A stretch of DNA of 64,000 nucleotides, taken from the NCBI GenBank assembly GCA_000708835.1, contig DF237297.1, positions 34,724-98,723 of the forward strand. Direction: 5' to 3'. Below are positions 3,900-64,000 of the stretch, in pieces. Every line of letters begins with the position of its first letter. The stretch's first letter is position 1. This stretch comes from Klebsormidium nitens. Lineage: Eukaryota > Plantae > Klebsormidiophyceae. Under the pieces are notes generated by a model. It was not told the DNA's origin. It saw only the letters and a list, made by a program, of their open reading frames with translations, and did not search any database. The position numbers were made by a program, and so were the translations under genes.

Positions 3900-4420
3900 G
3901 TGTACACGGTCTTAGTAAGACATATCCAACGCCACTGAGAGTTGCGTGCATGATAGATCTGCAAGCTTCCATACAATACCACGTCTGTATATTCTACCAT
4001 GGCGTATACCGTCTGCACCGCAACCTCTTGAAATCCCATGCTAATTATAATTAGTGCAGTCTCAGTATGCAATGTGTGTCATTGTGGTAACTTTAGTACA
4101 TGTACACGGGCCGCAGCCGCGGCCGCGTTTATCTATAATGATACAACAGCGAGCTCGCGGCGCCATGTGTGCCAGTGGCTTCCGAGCCTTGGAAGAAGCA
4201 TATAATATATAGTAATATAAGAAGCCTTTCTTATGCCTACTCTCGGAGAGTGGACGGTATAGCTGCATCATTGGCCCACATTCGCACATGCCCAGTAGCT
4301 TTATATACGTGCTAACTACTCAAATACATGTATAGCCGGGATATGGATTCGAGAATCATCAATGACTGATTGGCGCGGCCGGGCTGCAGTTTAATGTTGT
4401 TCAGCTCTGCCCGGAGCAAA
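3900..4420. other. Palindrome-rich convergent-junction spacer A
   Basis: Dense self-complementary words (AGATCT, GTATAC, TAATTATAATTA, GTACATGTAC, CCGCGGCCGCG, GAGCTC, TACATGTA) between the 3' ends of the first gene and TEN1. Boundaries approximate. Confidence 0.65.
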
Positions 4421-4663
4421 CTATGGTTTTTGCTGTGTGTCTGTTGTTGCCGTGTGTCTACCTGGCGTTTCTGGCAACATTCAGGGGCTTTAAATTCATG
4501 CTTCTTTGCTGTACAAGCTTTGAGCAGCCCGTAGCAAGTATTAGCTTATCATATAGTATCAACATTTCAAAAACATGGGAACTTGTACAAGCGTACAGCA
4601 GCATATAGTTGCCAGAGGGTGCTGGCCTCCAGTCAATCAAGCTCAAGTTATTATAGTACAACA

Positions 4664-5565
4664 TCAACCTACGGGCATAGATTCCATGAAAGTTCTCCGG
4701 AGCTTCAAAGCTTGGTCATAGAGAGCTTGGTCCAATCCATCAACGTTCCTGACAACTCTTGCTGCCAGAAAAACCTGCAATCAGATTGGCAGCACAAATT
4801 TGTAACTGCTTGCGAAGGACAAATTACCTGCTAAGGTAGAGTAGGATCAGCTTCAATAGCTTCTGAGGTTTGAGTCCAGTATCTATCCTGTGTGTGGTTA
4901 AGAGGCACATGTGGATGGTACCAATTTGTCAATGCAAGGGGAACTCTGGGAAAAGCTTGCATGCTCACCGCTTGTGCATTAGACTCAGTTCGGTGGTCAG
5001 CACGATGAAGTTCTCCGATGACTTGGTATAGGGACCCTTCCTTCAATACCTCGTGAGAGATTGTGGATAGGTCAAGGAGCAATTGCTGGCCGCCGTTGGC
5101 CAGTTCAGCCGCATTGGACGCGAAGTCTATATTGTGCAGCCTGCAATGAAAATCCATGTAATTCACAAACCAAAAGTGAGCTGTATTGCTGTGCCACACC
5201 GAATAATGCCAGGCAGTTGCTGGTCCCCTCAATGTAATAAGAAGTACTGCTCCAGAAGCAATCTCTTGGACTTTTTTTTCAATCTCGTGATTTCTTTCAA
5301 TCTCGTGATTACTTTTTTCAATAGAAAGATTCTAAAAGATTCGCGAGAAGTTATATGAGCACAACAAGAGTAGCGCCAATCTGCACAAGCAGTGCACTCT
5401 CGGCTCAACGCAGGTGAAGGAGCACACCCGTGCAGGTACTGTAGCTTTGCTAGCTTTGGCAGTGTGGCAGCCTTACCTCCCCATCAGACGGATTGTTGAC
5501 CCTGTCGCAACATTGACAACCTCGTCTAGAGTGATAATCTGCCCCGACCGGAGTACGGAAGCCAT
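4664..5565 (-). CDS. TEN1: CST complex subunit TEN1 (telomere-capping OB fold), 123 aa
   Basis: Exons 5565-5477, 5140-4969, 4774-4664; phases consistent. MASVLRSGQIITLDEV...GSTIRLMGR|LHNIDF...LLLDLSTISHEVLKEGSLYQVIGEL...|VFLAARVVRNVDGLDQALYDQALKLRRTF matches plant TEN1 hallmarks (GSxYQxIGEL; ARxxRNVDGxDxxLY). Confidence 0.9.
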
Positions 5566-5911
5566 GCTCAACGGGTGGTGCAAGAGATGGGCGACACCAT
5601 CAATGTCCCTGATCAAAGTTTGCCAATCTTTGCAGTGCTGCCAACCAATGCATCAAGGGATTGCCAATGCTGGCAAGCGGAATTGGGATGAGCAAGACTT
5701 GCTGAGCTTGGAAAAGCCTGTGTTTTTGTTGGGAAATCCTGATGAACAGGCGTCGATTGGCCTTAAATGTCAATAACCAAGTTTGCCAGGGAGCAATGGT
5801 CTGGAGCCCCTTTCCAGACAATGTCAGCCTTCGAGTCAAACTTCTTGACACCCTCAAGCTCAAGAGTTCGCCGCCAGCTGCCACAGCGCCACAGCGCAAC
5901 AACAAAAAGAA

Positions 5912-13100: not shown

Positions 13101-16100
13101 TTGATCAGCGTCCGTGACTCAAAGTGAAGAGGTTATCCCTGTCACTTCTGCGGTTGTGATCATCTTCTGCGTCCTGACGAGGGCACCCCTAGCGTTAGGG
13201 GCTTGTCCTCGATATGTTTGTAGGCTTCTCAAACGGCGAAGATTTGGGAGGAGGGACGGACAAAACGCATTTACTGGTGGCAATCTTGCTGACGCGAGTG
13301 CTACTACCATCATTCTAAGAGACGCCCCCATTGGGCCATAAGCATTTCAAAAGGATTTGGTGCTCTTTATTTGTTCACAGAACAACCATCAGGGATGACT
13401 TCATCTCCTTACTTGCCCACACACTGCATTCGATTCTCAGTCAACAATAAAAAGCGCACTCCATTGTAGAATAGGGCTCCTGGCTTTCGCCTGCGGCGGA
13501 GGGTGATCCCGTCAGCAGAGTCATTCACACCCGTGCCCCTTCCCACCCGTGCAGTGCGAGCGCGAATTCCACGTGGGCTGCCTGCGCGAGCACGGCGTGG
13601 CTGACCTCAGCGAGCTGCCGGAGGGCGACTGGTTCTGCGGCGGGGAGTGCGCGCGCATCAGCGCGCAGCTGCAAGCGCTGCTGGAACGGGGCCCGCAGGC
13701 GCTGCCGAATTACGTCATGGCGGGGGGCAAGCCGGTGGATGACGGCCGCGAGAGGACGTGGCAGCTGCTCAGAGGGCGCCAGGGGAGCAAGGACAACGGG
13801 AAGGTGCTCGCGGCCGCGGTGGACATCCTCTCGGTGAGGGCACGCTCCAGCCGTCCGTTTCAGAAAGCTGTCAGAAGAGTACCGAAGGAACAAGTGATCT
13901 GTCGATCCAAAGGGCGCCTTTCAGCTCTTCCATGTCCATGCCCCCAGTGAAGTCCGTCACGAGTCGCCCCAGAAAAGCGGTGGGGATGCAGAGGTTTTGA
14001 CGGGATAGAGACGAGCGTTTGAGCCGTTAAGGGGAGCAGACTTGTGGGGTAAAGTAGCTCCCGTTCTACGTTTGAGCTGTTTCAAGTACGAACGGCGGAG
14101 GTCGGCTTCAGGGGATTCAATCGTCGGATCTTGGTGCCTATCAGCCTTTTGGGAAGTTGGAATTCGTCATAGGCGTGCCGGCGAAGGTTTCTTTTTGGCA
14201 TGCTGTGTGATTCTGCTTGGAATAGCAAGCGTTGCTTCTCGAAGGCGTTGCAGAGAGGGGCGTCTGCTTGCACATCTGCCATTTCGAAGGCGTTGCCGCA
14301 AAGGGCGTCCTCTTCTTGAAACTTCGCTTAAGTACTTTAGGCATCCAAATCCTCGCTCGTCGTCCCCACGCGGAAGTGCCTCAACCCAATCATTGACGGC
14401 GCGATCGGCGAGGACCTGCTATTACATCTCCCATCAGATTCATCGCATGAAGAACGGAGGGGATATCACAGATTGCCCCTGAAGTGATTTTTAAGCTGAA
14501 CTTCTCACCCCTGGTCCTGTACAGAGGTGTTTCGACCCGATCATCGAGCGGTAAGGACTTTATGTTGCGCCTTTGGTCAGTACTTGTCCCTGCGAAAATC
14601 AATGCACCATTTGAGCTATCAGTGACGAGCTGACTTCGTACCCGTTATCTCCGTGCAGCGGTGCTTCGACCCGATCATCGACTGCGCGAGTGGCGAGGAC
14701 CTGCTGCCCATGATGGTGCACAGCCGGCAGACCAAGGACCACGACTTCAGCGGCATGTACTGCCTCGCGCTGCGCGCCGCGGGGAAAGTCGCCTCCTGCG
14801 CCGTCATTCGCGTGTTTGGGAACAAGCTCGCGGAGATGCCCCTCGTTGCTACCAGCCTCGACGCTCGCCGCCAGGTGAGGGGTCGCGGCGGGGGAACGGG
14901 CATGAATGAGAAAGTTTGGCGTAAAGGCTGGAAAACTGTTTGGCTTTAGAAGGGCTGGACAATCGTGTTCTGGAGATCCGTTTGGTTTTGGTTGATTTTG
15001 GTAAGGGTCGATGTAGACTTTGTTATGGAAGAAGGCGGGGAGTAGCATGCAGGACGGACTGCCTGATTAAAATGTGTGTGTAGTAGGTTTACGCTCACGA
15101 TTGTTGCGGACCCCGGGTTGCCCTTTTGGAAACCGACTCCATCTTGAGCTGTAGCGGTTCCCTTTCTGCCAAAGATAGGCTGCTGACGTTGCAGAGCATG
15201 CTAATTGTTGTCCCTCAGGTTTGTCCAGATTGTCAGGACAGCAAGAGTACTTTTGGTACCCGGCAATGACGGTATCTTTGCTTTGCTCTATGAATTTCAG
15301 GGCTCTTGAACATAGTGAGAAAATCCAACGTCGGCTTTCTCCGCCTGTAGGGTCACTGTCGGGCGCTGATGACGGCTACTGAATGGCTGCTGACGACGCT
15401 GGGGGTTGCTCGCCTGTCGCTGCCAGCCGCAGAGGGGGCGGAAGACACGTGGCAGACCGGGTTTGGGTTCAACAAGATGTCCCATACAGACGTAAGTGAC
15501 CTTTCTTGGGTCTGCCACGTGGAGTACTCCCTGCCCCTGCGTTTAGCATTGTTGTTTGTAGGCGCGGGTACATTGGCCCCTCAAGCATCTAAGAACTTGT
15601 CCCGTAGATATTGCTGCATTGCTCAGATGCCTTTTTTGCATGGCTATCTTAACCCGCATCCGCGGAGTTGTCTTTCGGCACAACTCCATGATGGCAACTC
15701 CAGACTCATCGTTCTCTCGTACTCTCGCCATCAAAGCAGATTCGATCATTTGGCGAAGCAGTTTTTATGCCCATCACGAGTGAAACTGACGCAACGTAAC
15801 CACAATGCCTAGGGCCACTTGCTCTGTTCCTTACTGTGTCCGGTTCAGCACTTCGTCTCTTACAACCTTGGAAAGTCGCTTTGAATCACAAAAGCAACAC
15901 AGACAAGCGCCGACAACCGTCTGACCCGTTGCCTCTTGCCGCTTCTTTTCAGCTCCAGAAGTGGCGTGCGGAGCTGCAGGCCCTGCTAGTGTTCCCCGGC
16001 GCCTCCATGCTCGAAAAGGTGATCCCCCCACTTCCCGGGATGGCGCGCCCACAGCCGTCGCCCCCATCTTTGCACCCGCGCCAGCTGTCGGGCCGTGCCG

Positions 16101-19100
16101 CGGGAGAAGGGGGGGAGCGGATCATGGGGCGGCCGATTGAGGAAGCCCTGGCGGCAGCGGCGGAAGCACGCAGCCGCGGGATCAGCAAGGGGAAGAGGAG
16201 CAAGACGAGCAGGAGCGGGCAAGGTGAGGATTGATACTTCTGTAACTAGCAGATTAGTCTGAGTTGACTTTTCCTGACGAGTTCAGATGGAGCATGGAGG
16301 TTGTATGAATGTGCAGGAACGGGGGTGCCGCTTTGCTGGCCCGTGTGTGATGACGAATTGTCGAGATGTAAGTTTAGAATGTTTGCGCGAGATGGCTTGG
16401 AAATCCTCATGGTCGCAGAAGTCTGGCATACCCCTTGCGTATTTCACGGATTACATCTGGCATCCTAGTCCAGTTCGTCAGTTGGTTGGTAATTGACGGT
16501 TCACCGTTCTGTTTGTCGTCTTTCTCTGCCCTCTCCCTGCAAACGCCACAAGAGGAACTTTTCGATTCCGCAATCTTTCGATCCACGGTCTCTATCCCGT
16601 AGGGAGGTCTGGAGGCTTGTACTGACTCGGCATCTTTCCGCAGGTGCCTCATCGGCTCAGGATGAGGAGGCGTCAGGCCCCGCCGCATCCAGCCACTCCA
16701 CTGAGGAGGACGCCCCCATCCTAGTTCAATTTGGGCGCAAGAAAACCCCCCAGCCGGCAGATTCCGACGACTCGGTGCCCATTGCTCAAATGCACCTGCA
16801 ACTGTCGGAGGCCCAGTCGCCCGGCAAGAGGAAACGGGGCCGCCCGCCGGGTAGCGGAAAGCCAAAAGTCAAAAGCAAGCGGGGGCGACCGAGAAAGCTG
16901 CCTGTGGAGGGGGAGAGTCGCCCGGAAGAGGCGACGCGGGAGTCGGACGGGGAGAGCGTGGATCTGGGCGGAGATGGGTTGCCACCGGCGGCAAAGAAAA
17001 GCAGAACGGAGGGAGAAGGAGGGGTGTTGAATCTGGAGGGGGTGGAGGGAGGGGCGAAAGTGTCGCCGATCCAGTTGCAAAGGAAGGCGCTGCAACATAC
17101 GCGGCCCCGGTCGATTCTGGGGAGACAACAAGCGAAGGGGTCGGGCGGGGAAGATGGGACGGAGTCGAAGGGAGAGAGAGAAGGCCCGCCGGTGGACAAG
17201 GCGACGATGTTCCTGGCGAACGTGCAGAAGTTCAAGGACAAGAAGCGGCAGCGGAGGGAGAAGATGCTGGCGGCGCGGCTGGCCAAGATGGGGGGGGATC
17301 CCCCGGAGGGCGCGGCCGAGAAGGTGACGTCAGCAAGCGAGGCGTCGAGCAGGAGCACGGGGCTCAAGGGGCCGCGCAGCAAACGGCGCGCGCGCGTGTT
17401 TGTGCCGGGGGCTGAGTTCTGGCTGCCGGGGAGGGAGGAGGAAAGCGAGGAAAAGCAGAAGCCGAGCAAAAAGATGCGGGTCGTGACGGAGAAAAAGCAC
17501 AAGGCGGAGGTCGAGAGTGGGGCGGCGGAAAAAGAGGCGCTGGTTGTGCCAGAGGGGGGAAGCAGTCCGGCGAAGGGCTCGCGAAGAAAGAAGCAGAAGA
17601 AAGCAGGAGGAGAAGAGCAGCAAGACGGTGGGGGGAGCACCGCGTCAGAAAAGGCGCGCGATAGTGCTGTGGAAACGGCGGAGGCGCTGCGGGAAGTTCG
17701 CGTGCTAAGCAAAAACCTGGAGCCTCACACGGGGGGTGACGAAAAGGACGGGGGAGGTCAGAAGAGCGGACGAGAAGCAGCGCAGCGCGGGACCGCCGAT
17801 GGGGAAACGGCAGGCCGAGACCAGGAAGCGGAGGGAAAAGGGGCCAAGAAGCGGAGACGAATGGAGAACGCCGAGACTCCAGCGGGGGAAAAGAATTTCA
17901 CAGAAGGGGCGAAAGGTGTCCAAGGGGAGAGTAACAAAGAGGCGGAAGGTGTTGACGGGGAGACTTTTGTGGAGCAGGAAGAGGCGGGATCAAAAGAAGG
18001 GGCCGAAGAGGGCACTGCTGGAAAGGAAGTGGAAAAGAGGAGGTCGCGAAAGAGAGCGCGACAGTGGGGAAAGCGGAAACGGGCGCCGAGGAGTGGCGGC
18101 GACGAAGGCACAGAGCCCGTCGCAAAGGATTCGGTGGTCGATATTGATTTTAAGGGGGATAGCAGACCGGGGGACGAAGTATCCCCCCAGCAAGAGGAGC
18201 AGATTGGCCAGACAAGGAAACACGGTCGAAGCGAGCGGACCGGGACGGCTCAGATGGCTGCTGTTAGCGAGGGGACTGCCGCGAAAGGTGATTCGAGCGT
18301 GCAAGGCACGAAGAACGGGTTGACTGGACACGGCAAAGGGGTCGGTAACGGAGGGCAAAGAGTTGCGGAGCTGAGCGGGGGCTTGGAGACAAAACAAGCA
18401 ACGGGCCGAAGTGCTGAAGAAAGGCCGGGGGGGCTGGTTTACCGCAGAAAGAAAGGCAGGGGGGCGCAGGAAAGGTGGCGAGAAGCTGCACCGGAGGCGG
18501 AAGCTGCCCTCGTAAAAGAGACGGTCGAGACGGAGATTGTGTTTCAGGGGGCAAATGCTGCTGCAGGCAGAGAGGGGGGGCGAGAGCAGACAAAACCGCG
18601 GCCGAGCGGATTGCTCGTCAAGGGGGTAAAGGGCTTCCTGATGAGGCAACCCGCAGCGTCACCCCCTGCTGATGTCATCCCTGAGCCGCCAGCAGCCTCG
18701 GTGTCCCCAACCGGCGTGCTTAGCGAGAAGCAGGCGAAGAAGAGGCTCGATAAGGCTGCTGAGAAGAGGGCGAGCGGAGTGATTGTTAAGGGCGTCAAAG
18801 GGTTCCAGAAGAAGAAGGGTCCCGAACCTGGGCCGGTGGTTGGCAGCCAGGAAGTGGTACTGGAGGGGGGGACAGGTGGGGAAGTGTTGGAGGCAGGAGG
18901 CAACCATGACAGGGAGGAAGGAGAAGCGGTGACGGGGAGGGACGCGTTGCCTCAGGAGGAGAGTGCGCCAGAAATGGGCATAGGAGACGGGCCGGGGGTA
19001 GAGGAGGCAGTGAAGGGCGGAGAGGGCGGGACAGAGCCGGCGGAAGTGAAAGTTGTGGAGAGTTTGAGAAGGGTGGGCGGTAAGGGAAAGAAGAAGAAGA

Positions 19101-25937: not shown

Positions 25938-27556
<1,619 letters not shown>

Positions 27557-47379: not shown

Positions 47380-47900
47380 TCATGGACAATGATAGAGCCA
47401 GGCAGCAATTAATGCCAGGATCGTTTGGAAGAACAGTACGCGTTCGCACGCAAGATCACGCAGCTAGATATGTATTGTGAATCACTATTACTGAGTATAT
47501 AAATACTTGTTAACCTGGGATCGACAAGCAGGCTGCAATCGCGCTCATGTGCACCATTCCGACCATGCGGACTCACGTATACTATATACATGATACTAAG
47601 CAACATGTACGTTGCATTACAACTTATTGTCATATATACGCACGTGCATCATTGTGCCTATAGTACACTGAGCTATATATTGCATGGACGTACGTATACA
47701 TTCATCGCGCATGCATGCATCATGGCGTAATTGCATAATGCGCGGGCCGCCGCACATATACCAGATGTCCCACATGCGGGGACGGTGCTGGCCGGAAAAC
47801 TGTATATGCATCTGAGTCTAGCTGCCGACCGAATACGTGCCTTCACTGGAATCATCACGACAATGTTTCTGCAGAGCCGCATGGTATGCACAGAAGTTGA
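47380..47900. other. Palindrome-rich convergent-junction spacer F
   Basis: CGCGTTCGCACG, CAGCTAG, TATATACATGA, ACATGTAC, ATATATACGCACGTGCAT, GTACGTATAC, GCGCATGCATGCATC between the 3' ends of APE2 and Aurora. Boundaries approximate. Confidence 0.7.
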
Positions 47901-48233: not shown

Positions 48234-51016
48234 TCATGAGGTGTAACTCCCGCTTGGTTCAGCGTTGGCCAGGATCCACGGGTGTTGAAGGACTTGCGAT
48301 AAAGGCATCCTCTGTTTGGGGTCTTTTATAAGAAGCTGCACAAAACAGCCCACGGTCAAAGCAGGCACTTCTTCGAGGAGCGAAACTCTGCCATCATTGG
48401 ACACAAGACAGACGGGAACGCCGAATCACTTCAGTCTTCGGCCCTTACCACCCAGCGAATCAAGTCAGACATGGCTCCTTCAGAAGGCTCTCACTACGTG
48501 CACAAAGCCATGCAACAAACGTACGGACAGTCCTGCAGCGATTAGGATCATTGAACATCATTGCTGACCTGGAAGCGGACGGCAAAGAGAAACATGTAAT
48601 TTCGCGCCAACGTGTCTTGACTCACTTTTGTGATCAGGTCCTTTGCCCCGAGGCTGACTTGCGGGTGGGCTGGGTACTGGAGGTCCACTCGCAGAATCCT
48701 GCACAGCAAGCAGTGACGTACTCAGAATCTTAAGGGGTACTTCGAGCAAGCAAGTACATTGCATACTTTTCTAGGAACGGCCAGCGGAGTGAAGGGCGAG
48801 GTGGCACGCTGCCCGAGCTGCCCCCGCCGGTGCGTAATCGGCTGCGCACCTTTTGTACGTCTCGGAGTGGCCCGCGGCCTCAAAGGGGGGCACCCCAAAG
48901 AGAAACTCGAAGAGGAGCACGCCCAGGCTCCACACGTCCACCGTGGCATCGTGCTCGCGGCCCTCAACTGCACGGGACAGAAACGCACGGCACGGCGGTG
49001 AGACGCCCATGGCATCGTTGGTCTCTGAGCAAGCTCCAGAGATCAACCGGACTGTGGACACGAACGATCATGGAAACAGCTCACGGTCAAGGATCAACTG
49101 TCGACCACAGAAAGAAGCACACAAGAGAGGCCGACTTTGGATGAACAGCTTTGCTCCGCGCATTGCAGTCCCCTGAAAAGTGTGAGTCGACAGGTGAAGC
49201 ACCAAATGTCGCCTCAAGCGTCTTTGCATGGCTGCGATGGATGATTGTGCATAAGTTTCTCAAGTGTCAAGAGACACGTGGCCTCACCCATCTCTGGCGG
49301 CAGATAGTCCAGCGTCCCGCACAAGGTCTGCCGGCGGCTGTTTGGAGCATGCACCGACCAGCCAAAGTCGGCGATCTTCAACTCGCCCTGCACAAACGGA
49401 AGAGTCTCAGAAAGAGTCCTTTCGTGAGATTTGAGAGCGATACAGAGGACAATACGAGCAATCACAGTTCTCTTGTCGGGAGAGATGCCGCGCAATGGAA
49501 AACCAGTCGGAGAACCTCAACCAGCACTTTGTTGCAGCATAACATCCTTTTCCCGGTGCTTGCCGGACGCGCTGACCTTGATGCCCATGAGCAGGTTCTC
49601 GGGCTTGATGTCGCGGTGGATGACGTGCTTGGAGTGGCAGTAGAGCAGCGCGCGCGCCAGCGAGGCGATGTACGTGGCGGAGCGGCGCTCGCTGAAGTAC
49701 TTGCAGCGCTGCAGCTCCTTGTACAGCTCGCCCTTGGCCGCGTACTCCAGGATCAGATACACACGGTTCTGCACCAAGCAACAGCAGGCCGTGTCACCAC
49801 AAACCCATCATCATGTCACCACTCAAGTGCATATCTCTGAAAGTGGAGCCGGGCAAGGGAGCAAGACAGTCCTGTGGCATGCCAGAGCGACGGGGTGAGC
49901 TTGCGCGGTGGCCACACCGTGTCATAGAAGTAGCCATAGAGGCGCAGGATGTTGGGGTGGCGCAGGTGGCTCTGGATCTCGATCTCGCGCCGCAGCTGGT
50001 GCTCCACCTGCGACTGCTGCAGCTGGTTCTTGAAGAGCACCTTCAAGGCCACGATGTACTTGCTCTGCATGAGGGGGAAAGGGAAGGACACGTTCAGCGC
50101 GCACAACTGGGAAACAGAACCTTGGCTGGGGGCAAAGACAAACTTGGGAGTTGCTGCCAGTGAAGTGTGTGCAGTGGGCTTGCACACACTTTGCCACAAC
50201 TATAGGTCTCATGTCTTTCAACTTATCCCCACCCACCCTTCCCCCCAAAGTTTGTCTTCGGTGTCCAAGAAGGGCTGCGGCAAATGTATGACTAACTAAG
50301 GAAGTCTGACACTTGGAATTACCATGTTCTCGTAAGAGAAGGAACATGTCAGGTGGACTCACAGCTTTTTCTCGTGCCAAGTATACATTTCCGAACTTGC
50401 CCCTCCCAAGAGGCTTGCCAATGTCAAAGTCCCCCAGTTGCCACCGTTTCTCGTCCTTCCCTTTCTGCAGGCTTCCAACCTCGCAAGATGTTGACTGCAG
50501 AGGAATTGTCACATCAGGGGGTCAAACGTCAGCTCTGCGCCGGTGCCAATTGCACAAAACTGTTCTCAGTTATAGACTGGCGGGGAGAGTAGGTGCCGAC
50601 GAAATTGTTTTCAAAGCTGAAGAAGATGTGTCATAACCATCTCTAGTATCTCAGGCGCAATCGCGGGGAATCGAGCAATGAATGCAAGCAGGTTTGGCAG
50701 ATGGTCATGTTGCTTGCACAAAATATGCTCTGCAGCAGGACCGCAAGAAACAGGGTTGCCCAATGAGTCTGAAAGGACAGGCATGTGACCAAGGTGACCA
50801 CTCAGGACCAGCCATAGGACTTGAGCTTGCGCTGCTGACCTCCTTTCCTCGCAAAGCCTGCTTGGGATCTAGTTGCTCTTCATCCATCCCAGATACACTT
50901 GCGTCCATGTTGGGCCTGTTCTCATCATTCTCCGCCAGCACAGCTCGACCTGTTTTCTCCGACACCAAAAATTCGTTGCGTGCTTTCTGGATTCGCCCAG
51001 TGGCAGGTGGAGTCAT
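48234..51016 (-). CDS. AUR: Aurora kinase, ~346 aa; extreme N-terminus uncertain
   Basis: Exons 51016-50840, 50494-50363, 50064-49918, 49768-49577, 49387-49288, 48967-48850, 48698-48626, 48335-48234. Motifs [104 protein letters not shown]. Confidence 0.97.
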
Positions 51017-52592: not shown

Positions 52593-55532
52593 ATGTTCGT
52601 GGTTACCAGCCTCGGGGCGTGCGCCGCATCATGTGCCGCGACTTGTGCGTGCGCAGCATGCAGAGGCGTGGCCGGCGGCATCAGCCGCAGGAGCGCACGT
52701 CTGGCGTACTGCGGCATCTTTTTGATGACCATGCTACTGGCATGGTTGCTGCGGGACTTTGCGGAGCCACTGCTCGACCATATTCCCTGTGAGTTTGCGA
52801 GTACCGGTTGCCGATGCTGGCGCGTCAGGACCGGGCGCAGTCCCGTCCATCCTTTCTGTGTTTGGAAAGTGCTTCCGGGTGATAAGTGAACAGGTCAGAG
52901 GTGGCCAGATGCTAGAGAGCAGCCTCGCAAGGTTGAAGTTGGGGAGTGCACGGTCACGTGATCAAGACGCTGTTTTAGTCTTTGCCCTGGTTTTGTTTTT
53001 GTAGAACACTCGCAACCCTAAAGCCGGAACTGCACGTCACGAGTTGCAGCGCTCTTTCATCTACACAACAGACATGGGGGGCTTCGAAAGTACAACTCAG
53101 CTTTAGGTTTCCATCTTACTGGAAAGTACATTGGAAGGTCGTAGTAAGGACAAAAAGCTGAAAAAGCTCAAATGCTAGACATAGAACTGTCAACTTTGTT
53201 TCACCAGTTCAACTTTGGTTCCTTGCACGCAAGATGTAGGTATGTAATCTAACAACTATTCTTTTCAAATACTTGCAACTTAACCTGCAACCAATGTTTT
53301 TGGCAGGGATCCATGCAATTGGGCTGAAACCTAGCAAAGAATGGTACGGCACGCAAGCTGTACTCCGCGTCAGCTTTGGCAGCTTCGTAAGTCGCCTTCC
53401 CTAAACCCTTCCATTTGAGAATCTGCAGACACCTCTACGTCAAAGGGTCCTCTTGAGCTGGTGTAGCTTATGTAGGAGCCTCCGTGCGGGGCTGGCACAT
53501 GGAAGAAGACTGCGTAGCCTGTTTAGCCCTTCAAAAAATGGTTGTGAGGAGTGCAGAAAATCGGTCTGCGGGTCTCAGCTGACTACTCGTGCACATGGGC
53601 CCCAGTTGGCTAGCTGTTGCTGAGAGGCGGTGCCGCCGGTGCCCTGACCCGTGTATGCGGCTCCTCCGGCTGCAGGCGTTCTTCACCCTGTTTGCCCTGG
53701 TCCTGATTGGCGTGAAGGACCAGCGTGAGCAGCGCGACGGCTGGCACCACGGCGGCTGGATGCTCAAGCTCTGCCTCTGGGGCCTGCTCATCCTGCTGGC
53801 CTTCCTCGCACCAAACGGCCTCATTGGGGCGTATGGTGAGACATAGCAGCATGCTCGAGGCCCTCTCTTCCCCAGCCTCCCTGCCAGCATGCGCAGCTGG
53901 CGAGCGTTGAAACACACAACCAAAAACTTATTCTGCTTTCGCAGGCTGGGACGTTCAGGTCTTCTTGATTGATTGGCACTATTTGTAAGTTGTGATCGAG
54001 CTGGCGGATTCGTATATGGCATTCCTTGGCGACGAGCATCTAGGCATCGACCCTGACACTGTTTTCGCTGCCGCGTTGTGCAGGCCAGGTGGCACGCTTT
54101 GGGTCGGGTCTCTTCTTGCTGGTGCAGGTCGTCATCCTCCTCGACTTTTCTCACTCGTGGAACGCGGCCTGGGTCGAGAAGGACGAGCAAAAGTGGTGAG
54201 CCTTCCTCGAGCTGGCCTCAGGTCTGCTGCACAAGCCAGCTGGTACTGCTATCGTCCTTGTTGCAGCCCTCGAGGAACAGAAGAGCGAGCCTGGGAGCCG
54301 TTTGTAAGAGTAAGCCGTTCCTCCCCATCTTGGTCGCAGATTGATGCAGAAGCGTCATTGAGGTGATGCTGAACGTCCATGCTGGGCCCGTTTTGTGGTC
54401 CCGAGCGCCCAGCTGACTCGACACGCCTGCTGTCCGTGTGCCCAGGTACCTGGCCCTGCTGGGCGTGTCGCTCTTCTGCTTCCTGCTGGCGCTCACCATG
54501 GCGGGCCTGCTGCTGCACTGGTTCCTCCCCGCGGGCGAGGACTGCCAGCTCAACCTGTTCTTCATCACCTTCTCGCTGCTCCTCGTGGCCGGCTTCACCG
54601 CCGCCTCGCTACACCCCGCCGTCAACGGCAGTCTGCTCCCCAGCTCCATCCTGGCCGTCTACTCCATGTACCTCTGCTACAGCGCCCTCGCCAGCGAGCC
54701 GCGCGCCTACGCCTGCAACGGCCTCGCCAAGCACCTCAACGCCGTCTCCGCCGGCACCCTGGCCAGCGGCATGCTGCTCACGCTGCTCTCCGTCGTTTAC
54801 TCGGCGGTGCGGGCCGGTTCTTCCAGCGGCACCTTCCTCTCGCCGCCTGGCTCCCCGCGCGGGTCCTCCCGGGAGCCCATGCTGCCCACCACGGCAGAGG
54901 GCAAGCACGGCCGCGCGGATCCAATCGACGAGGTGTCGGAGAGTGACGATGATGACGCACCCATGATGCGGCGGGGCAAGTCGACAGGGGGTCGCCCCAA
55001 GCCTGTGCGCTATGTGTACAGCTTCTTCCACGTCATCTTCGCGCTGGCGTCCATGTACAGGTGAGATTCGGACGGATGGCAGCGTCTGGGGTGCTGGTCA
55101 CTGGAGTTAAGGAGCTGGCCATGAAGGGCAGCAGGAGCAACAGCTTATCGCAATCTACGACCAGAGACGGTCACCTTGGTCCACTGCTCAGGCGTGTGTC
55201 CAAAAACTGATCGGCAGCCTTGGTTGCTGGTATCTGCGCTATGATGCTTCATGCATTCGTGCTTGTCAAGGTGCAACTGGGACCGTCTTTGATGACTCAA
55301 GACTCCACAAGGGAAGCTGGCTGTGGTTGCCCTTTTTGTAATTCTTGTCCACATCGTCTGCAGTGCCATGCTTTTGACGGGCTGGGGCTCCGCCGGCATT
55401 GAGGGCAAGGACATCATCGACGTAGGATGGCCGTCCGTTTGGGTCAAGATCGTGTCTCAATGGGTGACAGCAGCACTCTACATCTGGACCATGGTGGCGC
55501 CAATCATATTCCCCGACAGGGACTTCTCGTAG
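52593..55532 (+). CDS. SERINC: Serine incorporator (SERINC/TMS family) membrane protein, ~443 aa
   Basis: Exons 52593-52788, 53307-53386, 53676-53835, 54084-54195, 54446-55060, 55364-55532. Cys-rich N-terminus, SARLAY, AVLRVS, HHGGWMLK, LFLLVQVVILLDFSHSWN, GSLLPSS, YSFFHVIFALASMYSAMLLTGW, VWVKIVSQW, PDRDFS*. Confidence 0.95.
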
Positions 55533-55879
55533 GTAAGAAGTATGATTAGCAGCCTTCAAAATGTATAAACATAGCAGAACGAGCCGAAGAATCGATGTTT
55601 TTTATTGGCAATCGACCCTTTTTTGTAACATTCGAACATGGTCAGAGGGTCTGCCAAACATTTAGAGTACAACTGCAGTCTTGACCAGTATAGACAGGCA
55701 GGCTATAGTCCGAATTACTGTTCCTAGTGTCTGTGGATCCCCGTCACGTTGTATTTTGAGGACTCATACCTCACATTATCGTTGCCAGGCGGCCAGCCAA
55801 AGGTTGCCAGGCGGTGGCAATGGCCTCCCGATTTGTGCAGCCCAATCTAACTTTTTTGAAGTCACATCTTCGTGAGTAG

Positions 55880-56720
55880 CTGTATATATGCAGTGGGATG
55901 AAAATGAATCCACTGACATCTCAGAGTCGGCTCTGAGCTAGTCGGACCATTTGTCCGAGCTGCCTCGCATCATGCATTCACATTTTCAATTCTCAAAACT
56001 ACACATACGGTTCATATACAAAAGAATTACCTTTGATCCGGATGCAACAAGTTCATATCAGTATAGCTCATGGTTAGGCCCCCGCCCGTGACGCCCGTCA
56101 AGTCAAGCCTCGTATACTAGATCATTCGTGACTGCACACATGTATATATAGAGGCTATACGATCGGACCGTCCTATAGCTGGCACGTCAAATGCAGTCGG
56201 CCTCGAAGCTCACTGAGTCAGTGCCAGCCACATGTCACATGGCATGCAGCTTGGCGCAGCTAGCCTGCCATGGCGCAGGGCGGGCGGCCGCATATGGGTA
56301 TATGCCAATCATGATGCAAGATCGCGCCTATATATACTAGTGAGCGCTAGCAGGGCCTCCGGCCTCTGAACATGTGCAATAGCCAGCTGCGCGCCGGGAA
56401 CGGTATAGTATATATATAGCTGCGCATTATAAATCATTAGTATGCATGCGCATGACACACTGAAGTGCGCGCCGCCCGCGCACTGCGCGGCATCATGTGG
56501 ATTGTTACGGTAGTGGTACAGGCTATATAACGTGGCCGCGCGGCGCGTGCAACTTAACTATGAACGTATTGGTGATCTCGAATCGCGATCAGACGTCGCC
56601 GCGCCCTCGCACTAAGCTAGCTGGCTCTACTGGTGCATCATACACTAAAACTTCACATTCATTGAATTTTAGAATTGGGCCATGCACTGAACGTGCGCGT
56701 TCGCGACCGTACACAAGCAA
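55880..56720. other. Palindrome-rich convergent-junction spacer G
   Basis: CATCATGCAT, GTATAC, ACATGTATATATAG, CGATCG, GGCATGCAGCT, GCGGCCGCATATG, TATATATACTAGT, TATATATATAGCT, TATGCATGCGCATGA, GCGCGGCGCG between the 3' ends of SERINC and AHA1. Boundaries approximate. Confidence 0.7.
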
Positions 56721-57807
56721 CCTGCGATTTCTTTTTTGTTCGCGGTAGATTCTTCGTTATCTGTTTGAGTCGAGCGCGGCGGTGAATTTTCGAATTACCG
56801 CCGGCGAGTCGTACGGCGGTTTTGGGTTCAGTGTAAAAATTCGGGACTTAGCCGTTTTCGGAGGTCAAAATCGCCCGGACACGGGGCAAAAGTCAAAATC
56901 TGGCCGAAAAGCTGCCATAAGTCGGTCGAAAAAAATATTTGGACCAAACCCTCCGGTCAATCTCTTGTATACGCCCTCCCCATGAACTCCAACATTTTAC
57001 ATCTTCCTATTTGACTCACATTTGATACCGACCATGTCAAATATGATCGTAAATATCAGAAAATGGCGATTCTGCGGGTAAAAATCGCCGTGAGTACAGG
57101 CATACGCGACTCGGCGCGAAACTACCTATCGCGCACGGATTTTCCAACTTTTTGCCTCTAGACTCGCGGGTTCAGGTTGCTTGTGTATCGAATTGTGGCC
57201 CACAGATCAGTTTCGCATCGGATAGAAGTTGGAATGATCGGACCGCCGCCGGTGGTCGCTTGTATGTTAGATGCTCATTCAATTATTTTACTGCATCGGG
57301 GATAGTTGAAAGAAAACCACTCGTTTGCATCAAGCAATGATCGCCACGCTGCCGCCAAAGTGCGCGTTCAAGTTATCATCTAGTATACGTATATATTATC
57401 AGTGGTCAGTCGACCCAGCCGGGCATGGTTAGTCATTTCTCAATTGCCATGCAGTTACTGCTGCTCGGGTACGTCCCTGCACGCTACTTGTTGGCAGCGA
57501 ATCGTTTCCCATTCCCAATCCAAGGACATTCTTAAGTCCGTTGAAAGTACTGTCGATCTCACTTCGAGAATCAATTTGCATAATTCAAGACCCATTCCAG
57601 CGTGATCCATAAGTCACAGATTGTATGTCAAACAATCTCTTCCAATCATCCAGCTAGATCAGGCACGTGCTCTTCATAACACGAATAGCCTCACATCCCT
57701 GACAATATTTGCAAGGTCTGTTTGGTGCAAACAATGCCCACTGTTCTGAGGGCAGGTTACGAGAAAAGTTCTGGCAGGTACGGAATCTGATCGATCAGGC
57801 CCTTTTG

Positions 57808-59921
57808 TCAAGCGCCGTAGCCGAATACCACACGGATCTGCAAGCAACAGAACGATGGTACGTTTTGTTGATCAGATAGCCCCTCATAACAGCATTGATC
57901 AGACTAATACACGCAAGGGTCATGCAATGTCCCCAAATGTCGACTGTGCCAAGCTCGGACATGATACTACAATAAACCTACACAGAAATCCTGTGTGTGA
58001 AGCCGTTGCCACCAGACAGGTCTTGCACCTGCCCCCATGGCTCGTTGGGGTCAGAATGGGTCATCTGAGAGGAAGACCAAGTCCAGGCACGCACCTTTTG
58101 GAAGATGAGCTCCCGCCACCCGTGCTCCGCAGTTTCCACGATCCCGCCGTTGCCGTACCTGGGCACAGGGGTATAGAAACAGGTGATTTGAAGCTCTCAT
58201 CTGGCTCGAAGCACTCTTTCCAGTCGAGCAGTTACGAAGGTACCGGTGGCCATGAAGAGGGGGCCTCCCAACACTCCGCGCAGCACCTGTGCAATGAGTC
58301 AGACCAACGTATTCACAAGCTAGCGAGCGTCTGCATAGAGGCCATGGCCTCTGCCCGTGTGAAGCCTGTCCGCCTCTCCCTTCTTACCTGTCCTCGTCCG
58401 GGATGTCCGTTTGGCTCAGCTTCACGAGGGTGGTGCCCTCCTCCGGCTCCTCCAGCGTGAGGCACACCTGCACACACGCTCCCCCCACACCTCAGCGCGA
58501 ATGCCGCCGGCAGCCTCATTGAGTGTACCGCAGCCCTAGGAGACACGGGCTCAGATTTGTCGTGCATTTCGTGGAAGAATGTACTGGCAACCACCAACCA
58601 GGAGAGTGTCTGGATCCTGATCAGCTCGCGCCTGCCCTGGCAGCCGTGTGCCGTTGGCTCACCGTGGAGTAGACGCCGTCGGGCCAGTTACTGAAGCGCC
58701 ACTTTTGGATGATCAGCTCATACGGCACCACGTCTTGGACCACGCCCGTCACTGCCCCGTCAAAGAGCGAAAACGCGCGACCCTTTTCCGCTGCGATGCT
58801 GGCATTACTCTGTGTGAAAGCCTTCACACGCCGCTCGTCCAGCAGTGCCTCGAACACGTCGCGCGCCCGGCAATAGAACTTTTGCGTCATCTTGATGCTC
58901 TTGGTCCCCGCCTTGCCGCCCTTCTGCTCTGACCCTTTTTCGGCCTCCCCCTTGCTGCTAGCCCCGCTGTTGGAGACTCCAGCACTTGACGCCGATGGCT
59001 TGGCTGACGTTGCAGCTGGCACGGTCCCTTTCACCTCATCCTTGGCTGCTCCCCCTGCTGCGAACTCCTTCACAAACATTCTCAGCGCCTCAGCAATGAG
59101 CGGCCGCCCCTTGCTGACCACGGCGTCGCGCAGCCGCGTCCCCGCTGGCCCCGCCCCCTCCGCCACACTGACTTTGATCTCGGGGTCCTCATCCGCGTTC
59201 TCGTCCGCCAGATACGGGATGACAATGGCCCCGCGCGCACGCGCCACCGCGGCGCCCTCCCCATCGCGCACTTCACCCTCCCAGGCCAGCTTGACGGTCA
59301 GCTCGTAGCCAGGGATCATCTTGCCCTTCCGGATGTTGATGTACTGCGCAGCGCACTGCAGGTCAGCGCAGCAGCCACCAGCAGTGCAGACGGTGAAAGA
59401 AGCAATGATGCAGAGGGCAGAACAATGAGGCCAAGAGAGCGCCCGTCTAACCTTCCACAGCCAAGCAAAGTTGTTGTCCAATACGGGCGGGCGGCAGGTG
59501 CGGGCTCACCGCATCCCCTTTACAGGAGTCGAGGGTGGTGGTCTTGGCCCAGCAGCCGCCCTCCCCCTGCAGCATCTGAATGCCGCTCAGCAGCTCGCCC
59601 AGCCGCCGCTGCGACCACGGCAGGCAGTCCTTCTCCGTCCACTGGCAACACAGGCACACGGCAGTGAGACGCAGCGGAGAGCCACATTGCCTACTCATCA
59701 AACAATGAACTTGCACCAGGCACACATTGCAAGCAGATACTGTTCCACTCATCTACTCCTGGGACCAAATTGCGAGAACCAACAGCCCGCAAGCGATTAT
59801 TAGAAAGAAGTCGCATAATCTGAATGTTTGAAGGGCCACTCACATGATAGTTGTTCACATTTCTCCCATCCTGTCGCTCGCTGACAATCCATCGCTTATC
59901 TCCTTCCCCCATTTTAGCCAT
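57808..59921 (-). CDS. AHA1: Activator of Hsp90 ATPase (Aha1_N + AHSA1 domains), 354 aa
   Basis: Exons 59921-59844, 59641-59510, 59343-58663, 58467-58388, 58158-58095, 57837-57808. MAKMGEGDKRWIVSERQDGRNVNNYHWTEKD (NxNNxHW), RKGKMIPGYEL, QKWRFSNW, GWRELIFQKIRVVFGYG. Confidence 0.95.
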
Positions 59922-60509: not shown

Positions 60510-62936
60510 ATGGCGCGCGGTGCGGACCGCGATGAGGACGAGGAGGAGGAAGAGAAGGATGGGGGCACTGCGTGGGGCAGCATCTTCAGCATCCAGAACG
60601 TGGGCGGCAACCTGTTCACCGTGCTGCAGCTGGCGCTCATGACGTGGGGCATACGGGAGGTCAGTCGCACCCTGCAGCACGACAATGCAAGCGGGCAAGG
60701 CCAGGGGACGGCAGATCTCAACGTTGTTTCTTGGGCCTCTTTGTGCTGATCATATCGAGCTCATCAGCTGGAGCGTTGGGACGGACAGCAGTTCTCAAGC
60801 ATGGGTGCAACCAAAGACAGAGAAACTGCATTGAGTGCGTCAGAGATTTTTATCTTTGGATGTGGTCTGATTAGAAAAAGCTCAGAATCAAAAGTGGCAG
60901 TTGGCAATTAGAATAGCACAGAATAAGCATGAGCATCAGGGTGCATCGGGAGAGTGATTGATGCAGGCAGCTCACCGCTGGCCTTATGATGCATATCATG
61001 CCCCTGTAGAGGGGTAATTTCTCTGCGTGTCTGCTTGGCTTTCCTCTTCCGTCCAGATAAGGGAGCTGCACAACATAGAGCTCTAAGATGGACTCCTTGC
61101 GGCAACTTGCGGGGTCTCTGATGACTGGGCCCTTAAAAAGGCCATCTTTCTACCTGATGCACTAACCTCAGCATGGGTTCGCATGCGGGTAATCATCAAG
61201 GAAAGCTCTGTGCTTTTGTCCTCCCCCCCTCCTAGCCCCCCATCCCCCCCCTCGCTGGTCACCGGCTTGGGACCCCTGTTGTCGTGTGCAGCTGCGGCGT
61301 GCCTGGGCCGCCCACTCTGCTGCCAAGGCGCGTGCTGCCAGCTTTGCTCAGGGCAGCGCAGCTCCCGCCTTTGCGGGCATCAGCGCTGCGGCGCTGCGCC
61401 TGCTGGTGGACACTCAGCCGCTGCCGTACGCCATCATTGATTGCCGCCCGCGCGAGGAGGCGCGCGCCAGCCCCGCCCCCTTCAAGGACGTGCTAGTCAT
61501 TCCGGGTGAGCACGCCGGCGCGCGGCCTGCCACAGCGCAGCAGCCTGGAGAGAGCTCATCTGATGTTGGGGCCAGCAAATGTGTGCATTCTTTACTTGAA
61601 TACCGGTCGGAGTCCCAAGTACAGATCTCGCTTGCCTCCCGGCACTGTCAATGTTGGGGCTCCCGCACTTGGTCTGGTCTGGTCTGGACTCAAGTCCCAC
61701 TGATCTCTCGTTCGCCCCCTTCTTCTCTCTACAGAGCCGGAGCTACGATTCGCCCTGCAGCTCCCCCCACCCGCCTGGGAGGCCCGCTACGGCCCCGCCC
61801 CTCTTCCCGACCGCCGCAAGGCCGTGGTGTTCCTGTCCGCCAATGGGCGCCGCTCAGCGCAGGCGGCTGCGAGCGCGGCGTCGGTGGGGTACAGCCGCTG
61901 CCTGGTGCTGCAGGGGGGCCTGGCCGCGTACATGAGCGAGGCCAAGAGCGAGCGCCGCCCCGCGCGCTGCCTCAGCCGCCACGCGGTGGCGCTGCTCCTG
62001 CAAGGCCAGGCGCGCCCAGTGGCCAACGGGGGGGACGGCCACGCGGAGGCGGGCCACGCAGCAGCGGGGGGATGCGCGGAGAGGGGGGGGCAGCCCCCGG
62101 TGGTGGTGGTGGACCTGCGGCGGCACGACGAGCGCGCGCTGTATGGGGCCATACAAGGGTCGGTGCACATCCCAGGTGAGGAACAGGAGGGAGGGTAAGA
62201 GACGCGACGAGAAAATACGAGGGGGGAGCTGCAAGCGGGCTGCTGTTGTCAGGTGATGATGCAGCCATGGCCCCACCCTGTTGCAGCGTTGTCTTGGTAT
62301 GATTGGCCACCTGCTCGTTCTTCATGAGGTACGAGGCTCATCCGTTTGCCCATTCTTCCCCACTTTGTGCCCATAAAGTCACCCACGCGACGCTGGCCTG
62401 ACTTGCGTTGGTGTCGCGGTGTGGCAGTGGACCAGTGGGCGCGTGCGCTGGCGCTGGACGGCGAGGCGTGGGAGGCGGTGTACCACTGCCCCAAGCTGGG
62501 CCGCGACGCCCTGCTCGTGCTGGCCTGCCGCACCGAGCGCCGCTCCACGTGGGCCGCGCAGGTCGCGCACGACTGCGGGCTGCGCCGCGTCTTCGTGCTC
62601 AGCGGGGGGACCAACGGCTGGCGCTTCGACCCCCAGGTCGAGGTCTACGACGGCTACAAGGAGGTGAGCGCCACCGGCCCTGTTGACGGAAGGGCTGCAC
62701 CCAGCGGGGCAGGGGAACGGCCGCGACAGGGGCGGGCGGAATTGTCCAGTTTGCACAGTCAGTTTGTGTTTGCCAAAGGTGGACTGCTTGTCTCATGCAT
62801 CCTTTCTCTGGTGCTAATAGAGGAAAGTGCGCGGCTGCAGGGGTCGGCCCCACCGGCTCCCGTCCCTTTTGAGGTGGAGAAAGTGGACGAGGAGGCAGCC
62901 ACCAAAGAGCTGCGAGACTTAGGACTGCTCAGGTAA
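60510..62936 (+). CDS. Tandem rhodanese-domain protein with an N-terminal acidic stretch and hydrophobic helix, ~378 aa
   Basis: Exons 60510-60659, 61292-61505, 61735-62175, 62428-62663, 62841-62936; phases consistent. Domain 1: IIDCRPREE..VIP..VVFLSANGRRSAQAA..GYSRCLVLQGGLAAY. Domain 2: VVDLRRHDE..IQGSVHIP..LVLACRTERRSTWAA..VFVLSGGTNGW. Confidence 0.82.
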
Positions 62937-63279
62937 TTAGACAGACGGACATATAGGAACTGACGGTTTGGCAATTTGGACGTTTCATGTAGACTCTAAA
63001 GCAAGAAGTGCGCTGGTTATATCTGAACGGTCGGACTTGGAAAGGCGACGGTGTTCGAACCACTAGGATCCAACTATGGTGTACATGTGAGAAGTCTGAA
63101 CAAGGCAGCTTAGATGTAACGCTTCACTGGAGATATTTGGGGCCGGTTAGTGAGGATATTCCATCATTGTAGATCATACGGTGCTTGTAAAGGGGCATCC
63201 TAGCTTGAGCTCAAGTCTTCAAAGATCAAGAAGGGACTCTACTTCAATCTGCAACGTGTACTCGAAGCTTGATTTTTGA

Positions 63280-64000
63280 ATGCCTCGAGCTAGCGCTTTT
63301 GGATTAGACCTTGACAGTTTGACCTTAAGGGCAACTTGAATTTTACTGATGTTATTTTGCTGCATGATCGATTATATATTTATATGCATATCTTGCATGC
63401 AGTGAGGCGGATGAATCCCGAGTACATTGATTTGCGCCCCGCAGTGTTATTGGAATTCGGTACCGTACACTGAGGTCGGCCTACTACACATAGCGATCAA
63501 ATGTATATCGAATTCCAATCCGATCTACATGCATGCACTGCGGCGAACTGGCCGCGCCGGCCTACATACAATTACAGTGGGCGGCCGATTTACCAGCTGA
63601 GCGGTGTGCATATTCAATTGGGTCCGATCACACGGCCGTTTGCATGACAGTTTGAAATATCATGTGTATATAAAGTCGGCGGATCGATCATGACGCATAT
63701 ACTCAATCTGTAAACCTAGCTAGGTTTACAGCTAGCTAGGTCAATATATGCTAGCTACCTAGGCTCGTAACAGATCGAACAAATAAGGATCGATATGCAT
63801 GTGCAGAAAAACTTAAAAGCTAGAAAGCTAGAAAGCTAGAGACCATGCACAAAATTACATGCACGCGGGAATGCGTCAATGACTGTCAGCAGTGAGCTAG
63901 ACCGTCTAAATTAAACGATTAAATAATTAATTAAATGATTAAGTGATTATAATTGTTAATTGTTAATTGTTTATTAACGTCGGTTCGGAGCCATGACATG
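63280..64000. other. Palindrome-rich spacer H, downstream of the rhodanese gene, running off the window
   Basis: GCATGATCGAT, TATATTTATATGCATAT, TACATGCATGCA, GGCCGCGCCGGCC, CGGATCGATCATGA, TAGCTAGCTAG, (AAAGCTAG)3, TTAATTAA arrays. Confidence 0.7.

Follow-up and report, generated by a model that had tools for sequence, protein, structure and literature searches.

Tracts dense in short self-complementary words lie behind gene 3' ends in a nuclear locus of Klebsormidium nitens

We analysed a 64,000-nt nuclear stretch of the streptophyte alga Klebsormidium nitens (the window; GC content 54.5%), in which window position w corresponds to position w + 34723 of contig DF237297.1 (GCA_000708835.1). 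Eight tracts in this window carry a strong excess of short self-complementary words, and the rule for their placement is a position in untranscribed DNA immediately past a poly(A) site and not the convergence of genes as such. The observations support the view that the tracts represent a position-specific shared grammar and not a repeat family. The tracts might be a lineage-specific scar of repair or duplication, left in spacer DNA that is free of constraint, an explanation that we adopt tentatively. The first-pass annotation of this DNA knew of no description of such an element, and we found none in the literature searched, either for Klebsormidium or for other eukaryotes.

The 16 self-complementary 4-mers (pal4) were counted in 300-nt sliding windows. 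Expectations were derived from first- and second-order Markov models (M1 and M2) of the tracts themselves, with z-scores from 200 simulations, and the observed/expected ratio (o/e) of each sequence class was corrected with the trinucleotide-based M2. Over the entire stretch, a 300-nt window contained 19.5 pal4 on average (standard deviation (sd) 8.3). The threshold for dense windows was set at mean + 2 sd, and the 26 windows that reached it all fell inside seven of the eight tracts. The eighth tract, at 24900-25420, is under the threshold yet enriched (10.2 pal4 per 100 nt, o/e 1.39). The pooled tracts (5048 nt) contained 697 pal4, compared with 427-432 expected under M1/M2, corresponding to a 1.61-1.63-fold excess (z 12-13), while the remainder of the window showed 1.05-fold. 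Individually, all eight tracts had 10-16 pal4 per 100 nt and o/e values of 1.31-1.94, and the composition-corrected counts thus confirmed the palindrome-dense tracts listed in the first-pass annotation. The control classes (promoters, introns, untranslated region (UTR)-like DNA, and exons) had 5.8-7.3 pal4 per 100 nt and 0.98-1.21-fold ratios. The statement that promoters and introns are free of this texture was likewise borne out by the divergent promoters (o/e 1.11) and the RNA-proven introns (1.05). The UTR-like DNA from stop codon to tract gave 1.02, the large exons 0.98, and the 2.5-kb unannotated stretch at 22426-24899 gave 1.20.

The excess does not trace to a common ancestral sequence. 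BLAST searches of tract versus tract (word size 9, E 0.01) returned no alignment, TRF reported only three tiny arrays, all within one tract, and the tract at 55880-56720 was single-copy by depth in the bisulfite run. Decayed copies of one transposon, miniature inverted-repeat transposable element, or satellite family have one point in their favour: a genuine multi-copy repeat, at 56712-57185 (to ~57450), adjoins this tract in the spacer between the Serinc and Aha1 genes. RNA contigs from other copies match 56712-57185 at ~4% differences with loose ends at 56712, and the bisulfite-run depth over it was 3-4 times that of the flanks; neither the related loci nor any other part of the window yielded a further copy. 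The repeat is outside the grammar, as the pal4 o/e over 56721-57450 was 1.01. With no inter-tract alignment, almost nothing found by TRF, single-copy depth, and an adjoining repeat that lacks the texture, a repeat family is the least probable of the explanations considered here, and the earlier claim that the tracts share a grammar rather than belonging to a transposon family stands.

Gene strands were taken from the public annotation, RNA contigs, Pfam, homologues, and tblastx frames, with protein searches run exon by exon. A self-trained codon model combined with splice-motif counts was adequate only on GC-rich genes and was superseded. The RNA evidence at 53801-59800 consisted of assembled contigs of three RNA runs, whose ends locate poly(A) sites only approximately. 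Of the six junctions described as convergent, five have evidence from both sides: 19720-20420 and 30360-30620 by public annotation, 55880-56720 by the splice orientation of RNA contigs, 3900-4420 by a sub-gathering Ten1 Pfam match on the minus strand plus codon scores on the plus strand, and 47380-47900 by homologues for the plus-strand gene and tblastx frames for the minus-strand one. The junction at 37300-38260 is proven on its left gene only. The remaining two tracts, which had been placed downstream of a gene, indeed each lie behind a single gene, the ubiquitin-like gene for 24900-25420 and the rhodanese-like gene for 63280-64000.

Genes alternate in strand in the window, so the convergent rule and the 3'-end rule coincide here. 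The two tracts behind single genes, together with the placement at the tandem junction, identify the rule as a position behind the poly(A) site. At this tandem junction, the texture is next to the 3' end of the upstream gene, and the 2.5 kb toward the next promoter are near baseline. Between convergent pairs, the tract occupies all of the DNA between the two 3' UTRs. In the alignment of K. nitens with contig L002 of a close relative (the Logan assembly of SRR23617307; exons 87% identical to those of K. nitens), ~150 nt past each stop codon are conserved, and the tract lies between these blocks. In the RNA-covered region, Serinc transcript contigs stop at the left edge of the tract, and no contig of the three runs was found on 56001-56600, though Serinc and Aha1 are both contig-covered. 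The first-pass claim that tracts occur at all six convergent junctions and at no divergent one therefore stood as to the five junctions proven on both sides and the bare promoters, and did not stand as to convergence being the rule.

The symmetry in the tracts is of very short reach. The self-complementary dinucleotides had ratios of 1.45 (AT), 1.55 (GC), 1.07 (TA; 0.55 elsewhere), and 1.11 (CG; 0.82 elsewhere). Purine-purine and pyrimidine-pyrimidine steps were lowered, with AA/TT and GG/CC at 0.72-0.81, and AC/GT steps were unchanged. Fifteen of the 16 palindromic 4-mers were present at 1.25-2.4 times the M2 expectation, with AGCT the most enriched and CCGG (0.92) the exception. The eight non-alternating palindromes (AGCT, CTAG, GATC, TCGA, AATT, TTAA, GGCC, and CCGG) were raised as much as the eight alternating ones, indicating that palindromy, and not the purine-pyrimidine alternation earlier noted as frequent, is the variable. 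The chance that a palindrome extends was 0.32 for the first pair and 0.43 for the second, versus 0.22 and 0.27 elsewhere; the rise was mainly there, and the symmetry arms are only 1-2 nt long. Palindromic 6-mers were at expectation once the 4-mer content was modelled (M3). Inverted symmetry decayed over spacers of 0 to 5, odd spacers included, autocorrelation was restricted to lags 1-4, and mirror repeats were not enriched in the tracts.

Exact tandem duplications of period 4 were 3.4 times more frequent than expected (z 9), while periods 3, 5, and 6 were at expectation. Among the duplicated units, 62% derive by rotation from palindromic 4-mers, e.g., (CATG)n, (GATC)n, (GTAC)n, and (AGCT)n, whereas such palindromic families make up 19% of all 4-mers. 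Masking the short tandem repeats removed 6% of the tract bases and left a 1.55-fold excess; with TRF finding almost nothing, a microsatellite explanation was rejected. The top 6-mers of the tracts were TGCATG/CATGCA, CTAGCT/AGCTAG, GCATAT, TATATA, GTATAT, and CATATA. TATATA occurred in 14-18 copies in the 5 kb of tracts versus one in the other 59 kb, 18 of 20 (TA)3+ runs were in tracts or spacers, and tracts held 14 of the 19 copies of TGTATA/TATACA. TGTAA and AATAAA showed no clear concentration in the tracts. When half-tracts were oriented by their upstream gene, no strand asymmetry was detected (chi2 35.7, df 32; genes give 181).

A supercoil sink of Z-DNA or cruciforms, as put forward in the first-pass annotation, or hairpins in read-through RNA, would suit a location at which positive supercoils are expected, and some alternating runs do occur, such as (GTAC)3, (CATG)2, and (TA)4-5. 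The fold-energy z-score versus dinucleotide shuffles was, however, +0.10 +/- 0.16 (29 windows of 150 nt) and did not differ from that of the controls, and AC/GT steps were not enriched. Just 23 of the 94 perfect palindromes of at least 10 nt were located in tracts, and most of those measured 10-12 nt. Considering the arms of 1-2 nt, where extrusion takes ~6 nt or more, longer palindromes at their predicted frequency, and an excess for which alternation is unnecessary, we regard such structures as very unlikely, though a shade less so than a repeat family.

Run X21 showed 741 G>A versus 133 C>T differences over 53801-59800, from which we infer that it is a bisulfite library, and it matches the 2018 MethylC-seq study of the same strain (PMC5890265). 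Methylation was read from the kept G relative to the CG counts per contig piece, on one strand of one contig. The gene body at 58264-59800 kept 116 G for 118 CG. Gene-body CG methylation is thus near complete, in agreement with the K. nitens methylome, where gene bodies are CG-methylated (PMC5890265). The right end of a tract (56550-56755) kept none of 43 G, including none at its 18 CG, and is unmethylated on the strand read; the piece at 55500-56271, which mixes 3' UTR and tract, kept 21 G for 34 CG. The symmetric 5-methylcytosine platform suggested earlier is therefore not supported where readable, since 56550-56755 was fully converted on the one strand of the one contig. The methylome study reported that methylation is excluded from promoters, and described no 3' spacers or palindrome bias (PMC5890265). 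The tract right end resembles the unmethylated islands between CG-methylated gene bodies (PMC5890265), as does the change in CG o/e from 0.82 to 1.11, but absent CpG decay fails to explain the AT, TA, GC, and 4-mer excess of the tracts. The tracts do not arise as a by-product of CpG decay, consistent with the original remark that such decay offers no explanation.

The close relative keeps the texture at all three orthologous spacers fetched, with pal4 o/e values of 1.58 (F-box/PHD), 1.57 (Aha1/Serinc), and 1.76 (the rhodanese 3' flank, contig L042 600-1350), while the rest of its loci gave 0.98-1.10. The tract sequences of the two species were only 41.5% and 46.5% identical, compared with 41 +/- 1-2% for shuffles and 65% for the introns of the flanking genes. 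A more distant pair, the Klebsormidium-like genomes L004 and L006 from the JGI metagenome 3300060284 (exons 73-85% identical to those of K. nitens), share 85-92% identity with one another and can be aligned through introns. Their racemase tract diverges by 16.0% versus 10.0% for introns (p 1.5e-5) and carries more indels. Within it, palindrome-covered sites diverge by 18.8% versus 14.8% for the other tract sites, and 35 of 116 palindromes are shared. With tract identity at the shuffle level and divergence exceeding that of introns, we discarded a conserved non-coding element. In these alignments, individual palindromes are not conserved, and because of the turnover data we reject a site-specific function. 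The texture is weak in the distant species (o/e 1.04-1.38), and the orthologous Aha1/Serinc convergent spacer shows no excess there (1.04). The inspection of orthologous junctions proposed in the first-pass annotation thus had a divided outcome, with texture in the close relative and weak or absent texture in the distant species.

Equal texture at the same spacers, combined with randomised sequence, shows that palindrome density is under a restoring force. Ordinary substitution at the observed rate would erase a 1.6-fold excess within the divergence of K. nitens and its close relative, which argues for the same force. The source of this force is either mutation or else weak selection that acts on the density of words. 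By contrast, the tracts could be explained passively, as the state to which DNA free of constraint, transcription, and methylation ordinarily settles in this genome, with no special process. The fast turnover and symmetric strands are compatible with such drift, and so are the undepleted TA and CG, as expected without mRNA or methylation pressure. Neighbour-dependent substitution alone, however, cannot give 1.6-fold over the trinucleotide expectation, promoter and unannotated intergenic DNA lack the texture, and the distant relatives have much less of it with the same genome layout. We consider passive drift improbable.

A chromatin or architecture platform, in which dyad-symmetric, A-tract-poor DNA controls nucleosome occupancy or loads or retains cohesin, an origin complex, or a 6mA system at ApT, is slightly better placed than drift, but still improbable. 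The distinctive composition (AA/TT and GG/CC at 0.72-0.81, AT 1.45, GC 1.55) could serve such a role, the tract right end lacks the methylation of the gene bodies around it, and the location matches the 3' nucleosome-depleted regions, cohesin, and positive supercoils of yeast (bioRxiv 10.1101/2022.11.02.514956; PMC8360656). Autocorrelation in the tracts, however, revealed no nucleosome-like periodicity of ~10 bp, as the signal lies entirely within lags 1-4, and the texture is weak or absent in the distant relatives.

Of the explanations weighed, we rank the repair or duplication scar first, at somewhat less than even chances, and a two-way termination grammar second. The ranking follows from the generic and very short symmetry, the period-4-specific duplications, the fastest-evolving DNA in the locus, and the lineage-limited strength. 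In the proposed mechanism, the tracts would be the oldest DNA of a single compartment, the untranscribed spacer beyond poly(A) sites, which turns over faster than introns. Converging or arriving polymerases would accumulate torsional stress in the termination zone, where a type II topoisomerase and end joining would act on breaks, with error-prone repair. Each repair event would leave duplications of 2-4 nt and self-complementary junctions. This strand-symmetric process would continually renew the excess of short words, strongly in K. nitens and its close relative and weakly in the distant Klebsormidium-like algae. We infer both the mutational nature of the restoring force and the enzymes that cause it.

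Published data on other systems provide precedents for these steps. Positive supercoils accumulate behind genes, most of all between convergent ones (PMC8360656), and trapped topoisomerase II leads to 2-4-bp duplications via end joining, with AGCT the most often duplicated 4-mer in human data (PMC8795545; bioRxiv 10.1101/2020.05.03.075358). The tracts resemble this topoisomerase II signature (ID17/ID_TOP2alpha) in having too many tandem duplications of 4 bp (and 2 bp), which in both cases lie outside repetitive DNA at places of expected topoisomerase II activity, and the top duplicated unit of the human signature, AGCT, is the most enriched palindrome in the tracts. They differ in that duplications account for only part of the tract palindrome excess.

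Several results weigh against the repair or duplication scar. In the palindrome-rich aligned DNA of L004 and L006, a weakly textured pair, five of 27 indels were tandem and three were inverted copies of neighbouring sequence, and none of the four 4-nt indels was a duplication, in what is a small test. The alignment contained no micro-inversions or P-nucleotide footprint, and its substitution spectrum was ordinary. The young repeat copy that adjoins the tract at 55880-56720 was not more palindromic than its relatives elsewhere (4 versus 8 palindromes at 15 differing sites, unpolarised). Tandem-repeat masking, which takes only 6% of the bases, leaves most of the excess in place (1.55-fold), and by a rough estimate intact duplications explain at most about a third of it. 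Promoters lack the texture though they are also unmethylated intergenic DNA, and the duplication motifs published for TOP2 lack palindromy (PMC8795545). Finally, we estimate that about a fifth of all changes must create palindromes beyond chance, a large flux.

The second-ranked explanation invokes a functional grammar at the level of density, in which selection on word density would maintain a zone of two-way Pol II termination, fail-safe polyadenylation, or insulation; we regard it as possible, with lower probability than the scar. The tract begins where transcript contigs end, and the neighbours of the contig-free interval 56001-56600 are covered. The texture is present in every 3' spacer of the window and in no promoter or intron, and in the close relative three orthologous spacers keep it despite randomised sequence. 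TATATA-type words are almost exclusive to tracts and spacers, words such as TGTATA/TATACA and TGCATG are readable on both strands, and the strand symmetry is consistent with use from both directions. Yeast supplies precedents, as its bidirectional termination zones centre on a palindromic UAUAUA element (bioRxiv 10.1101/2022.11.02.514956), and short inverted repeats occur at its poly(A) sites (PMC6420913).

Other observations fit this functional grammar poorly. Nearly all palindromic 4-mers are enriched, so that no single reader is implied; sites within palindromes show no greater conservation than adjacent sites, and introns evolve more slowly than the tract. The o/e of 1.04 in the convergent spacer of the distant relative means that the texture is not required for convergent genes as such, and the tracts have no folding potential. 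The tract is also mostly downstream of cleavage sites, while the yeast elements are upstream, within a ~120-bp zone. A bolder version strikes us as rather doubtful: a genome-wide "dyad grammar" that would serve as a two-way Pol II stop or boundary zone in K. nitens and close relatives. Any short self-complementary word might be read from both strands, e.g., by homodimeric factors or DNA mechanics, and density-only selection might keep the grammar while sites turn over faster than introns.

With respect to known systems, the tracts resemble the yeast termination zones in their location at gene 3' ends, their occurrence in common to convergent genes, their strand symmetry, the confinement of TATATA-type words, and the compact genome. 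The yeast zone spans ~120 bp upstream of or around the cleavage sites of both strands, within the shared 3' UTRs, and has one motif family, whereas the K. nitens tracts measure 260-960 nt, lie mostly downstream of transcript ends, and use nearly all self-complementary 4-mers, including GC-rich ones. Enrichment in UAUAUA-type words is therefore shared with the yeast zone, and width and upstream position are not. Bacterial REP elements and bidirectional intrinsic terminators also concentrate palindromic DNA between convergent genes, but those are repeated families or long GC-rich folding stems, and the tracts show no family, stems, or folding excess. The tracts thus depart from the yeast zone in width and position and do not behave as structural inverted repeats, repeats, or conserved elements. 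They are best filed as a variant within the known class of 3' intergenic or termination zones with special composition.

The individual tracts and their neighbours are as follows. The first tract, 3900-4420 (11.9 pal4 per 100 nt, o/e 1.31), has a plus-strand gene on its left, represented by a coding signal at 366-3743 from codon scores, and a minus-strand Ten1-like gene on its right, represented by a Ten1_2 Pfam match at 4834-5331 (E 2e-5, below the gathering score). The second, 19720-20420 (15.3 per 100 nt, o/e 1.63), separates a plus-strand PHD/TDBD/IDM1-like gene (stop 19477) from a minus-strand F-box gene (stop 20709), both in the public annotation. Relative to L002, the conserved 3' UTR blocks at this junction end at 19635 and 20569, and the centre of the tract is barely alignable. 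The PHD/TDBD/IDM1-like gene (at least 2356 aa) has one very purine-rich 3-kb exon, at 16493-19477, with a GC skew of +0.39 and an AT skew of +0.5; this exon encodes a Lys/Glu/Gly-rich low-complexity protein with ~76% identity to the close relative.

The stretch between the start of the F-box gene and the next tract, 22426-24899, has no called gene, and contains a 10/20-nt tandem array of AAAGTCGCGG-like units at 24025-24242. The weaker tract at 24900-25420 belongs to the sole tandem junction of the window, 0.5-1 kb downstream of where the minus-strand ubiquitin-like gene (25938-27403, public annotation) has its stop codon (25938). The short tract at 30360-30620 (11.9 per 100 nt, o/e 1.37) is inside a 560-nt stop-to-stop gap between RNase H2 subunit C (RNase H2C; 28384-30288, plus strand) and a UPF0172 gene (stop 30848, minus strand), both from the public annotation. 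Because this gap is so short, the poly(A) sites would have to sit at or inside the tract edges.

The tract at 37300-38260 (11.9 per 100 nt, o/e 1.53) contains (GTAC)3, (TCGA)3, and (CATG)2 runs and follows a plus-strand Asp/Glu-racemase-like gene, identified by Pfam and homologues, to the left of 37300. The sequence TGTACAGATT at 37277-37295 (L004 ~13335-13350), ~130-150 nt past the racemase stop, is identical in K. nitens and both distant relatives, and may represent a conserved 3' UTR or poly(A)-region element. Gene order in the racemase-PHD region of L004 and L006 differs from that of K. nitens, and ~4 kb between these two genes (L004 14062-18576 versus L006 14083-17934) are unalignable and without shared coding signal. 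The tract at 47380-47900 (14.8 per 100 nt, o/e 1.44, four TATATA) lies between a plus-strand endonuclease-like gene, with an exon at 44539-45549 assigned by homologues, and a minus-strand gene at ~48.6-50.5 kb, whose best tblastx frames to L042 are at 49592-50172. For a 337-aa exon, the search of protein representatives yielded a 2.6-kb contig, L003, as the only lead.

The strongest tract, 55880-56720 (16.2 per 100 nt, o/e 1.65, five TATATA), separates Serinc on the plus strand from Aha1 on the minus strand. The last exon and 3' UTR of Serinc occupy 55361-55870, with RNA-contig ends at 55745, 55829, and 55870 in the three runs, and those of Aha1 occupy 57450-57837, with an RNA contig from 57583 and depth in the 57401-57600 bin. 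Intron ends of GT..AG on the left (Serinc, plus) and CT..AC on the right (Aha1, minus) fix the strands. The Aha1 exon matched no Klebsormidium-like locus among the metagenome contigs, the best match being 48% identical. The last tract, 63280-64000 (16.2 per 100 nt, o/e 1.94), lies behind the plus-strand rhodanese-like gene and contains the longest perfect palindrome in the window, the 24-nt CTGTAAACCTAGCTAGGTTTACAG at 63708-63731, with TGTAA on both strands. Some green algae use TGTAA as their poly(A) signal. The window end is the end of DF237297.1 (98,723 nt), and the assembly breaks inside this palindrome-dense tract.

Elsewhere in the window, Pfam searches with 20 open reading frames (ORFs) of unclear regions matched only Ten1, Serinc, and the racemase, and Rfam and tRNA scans found nothing. 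The 503-aa product is the NCBI protein KFL_003480090, and the 510-aa ORF has no exact protein record, as the annotated start differs. The sequence TGACGTCA occurs at 1350, 17325, and 39512, in three copies versus 0.9 expected; nine of 100 shuffles reach three.

If the restoring force is mutational, these spacers would be a natural record of break repair tied to transcription termination or torsional stress, and a streptophyte alga near the land plants would allow that record to be read across a whole genome. Should selection on word density be responsible instead, the tracts would represent a new terminator or insulator code without conserved sites, from which compact terminators that work in both directions could be drawn for the engineering of algae and plants. 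In both cases, the texture can mark gene 3' ends and strand switches in the annotation of Klebsormidium assemblies.

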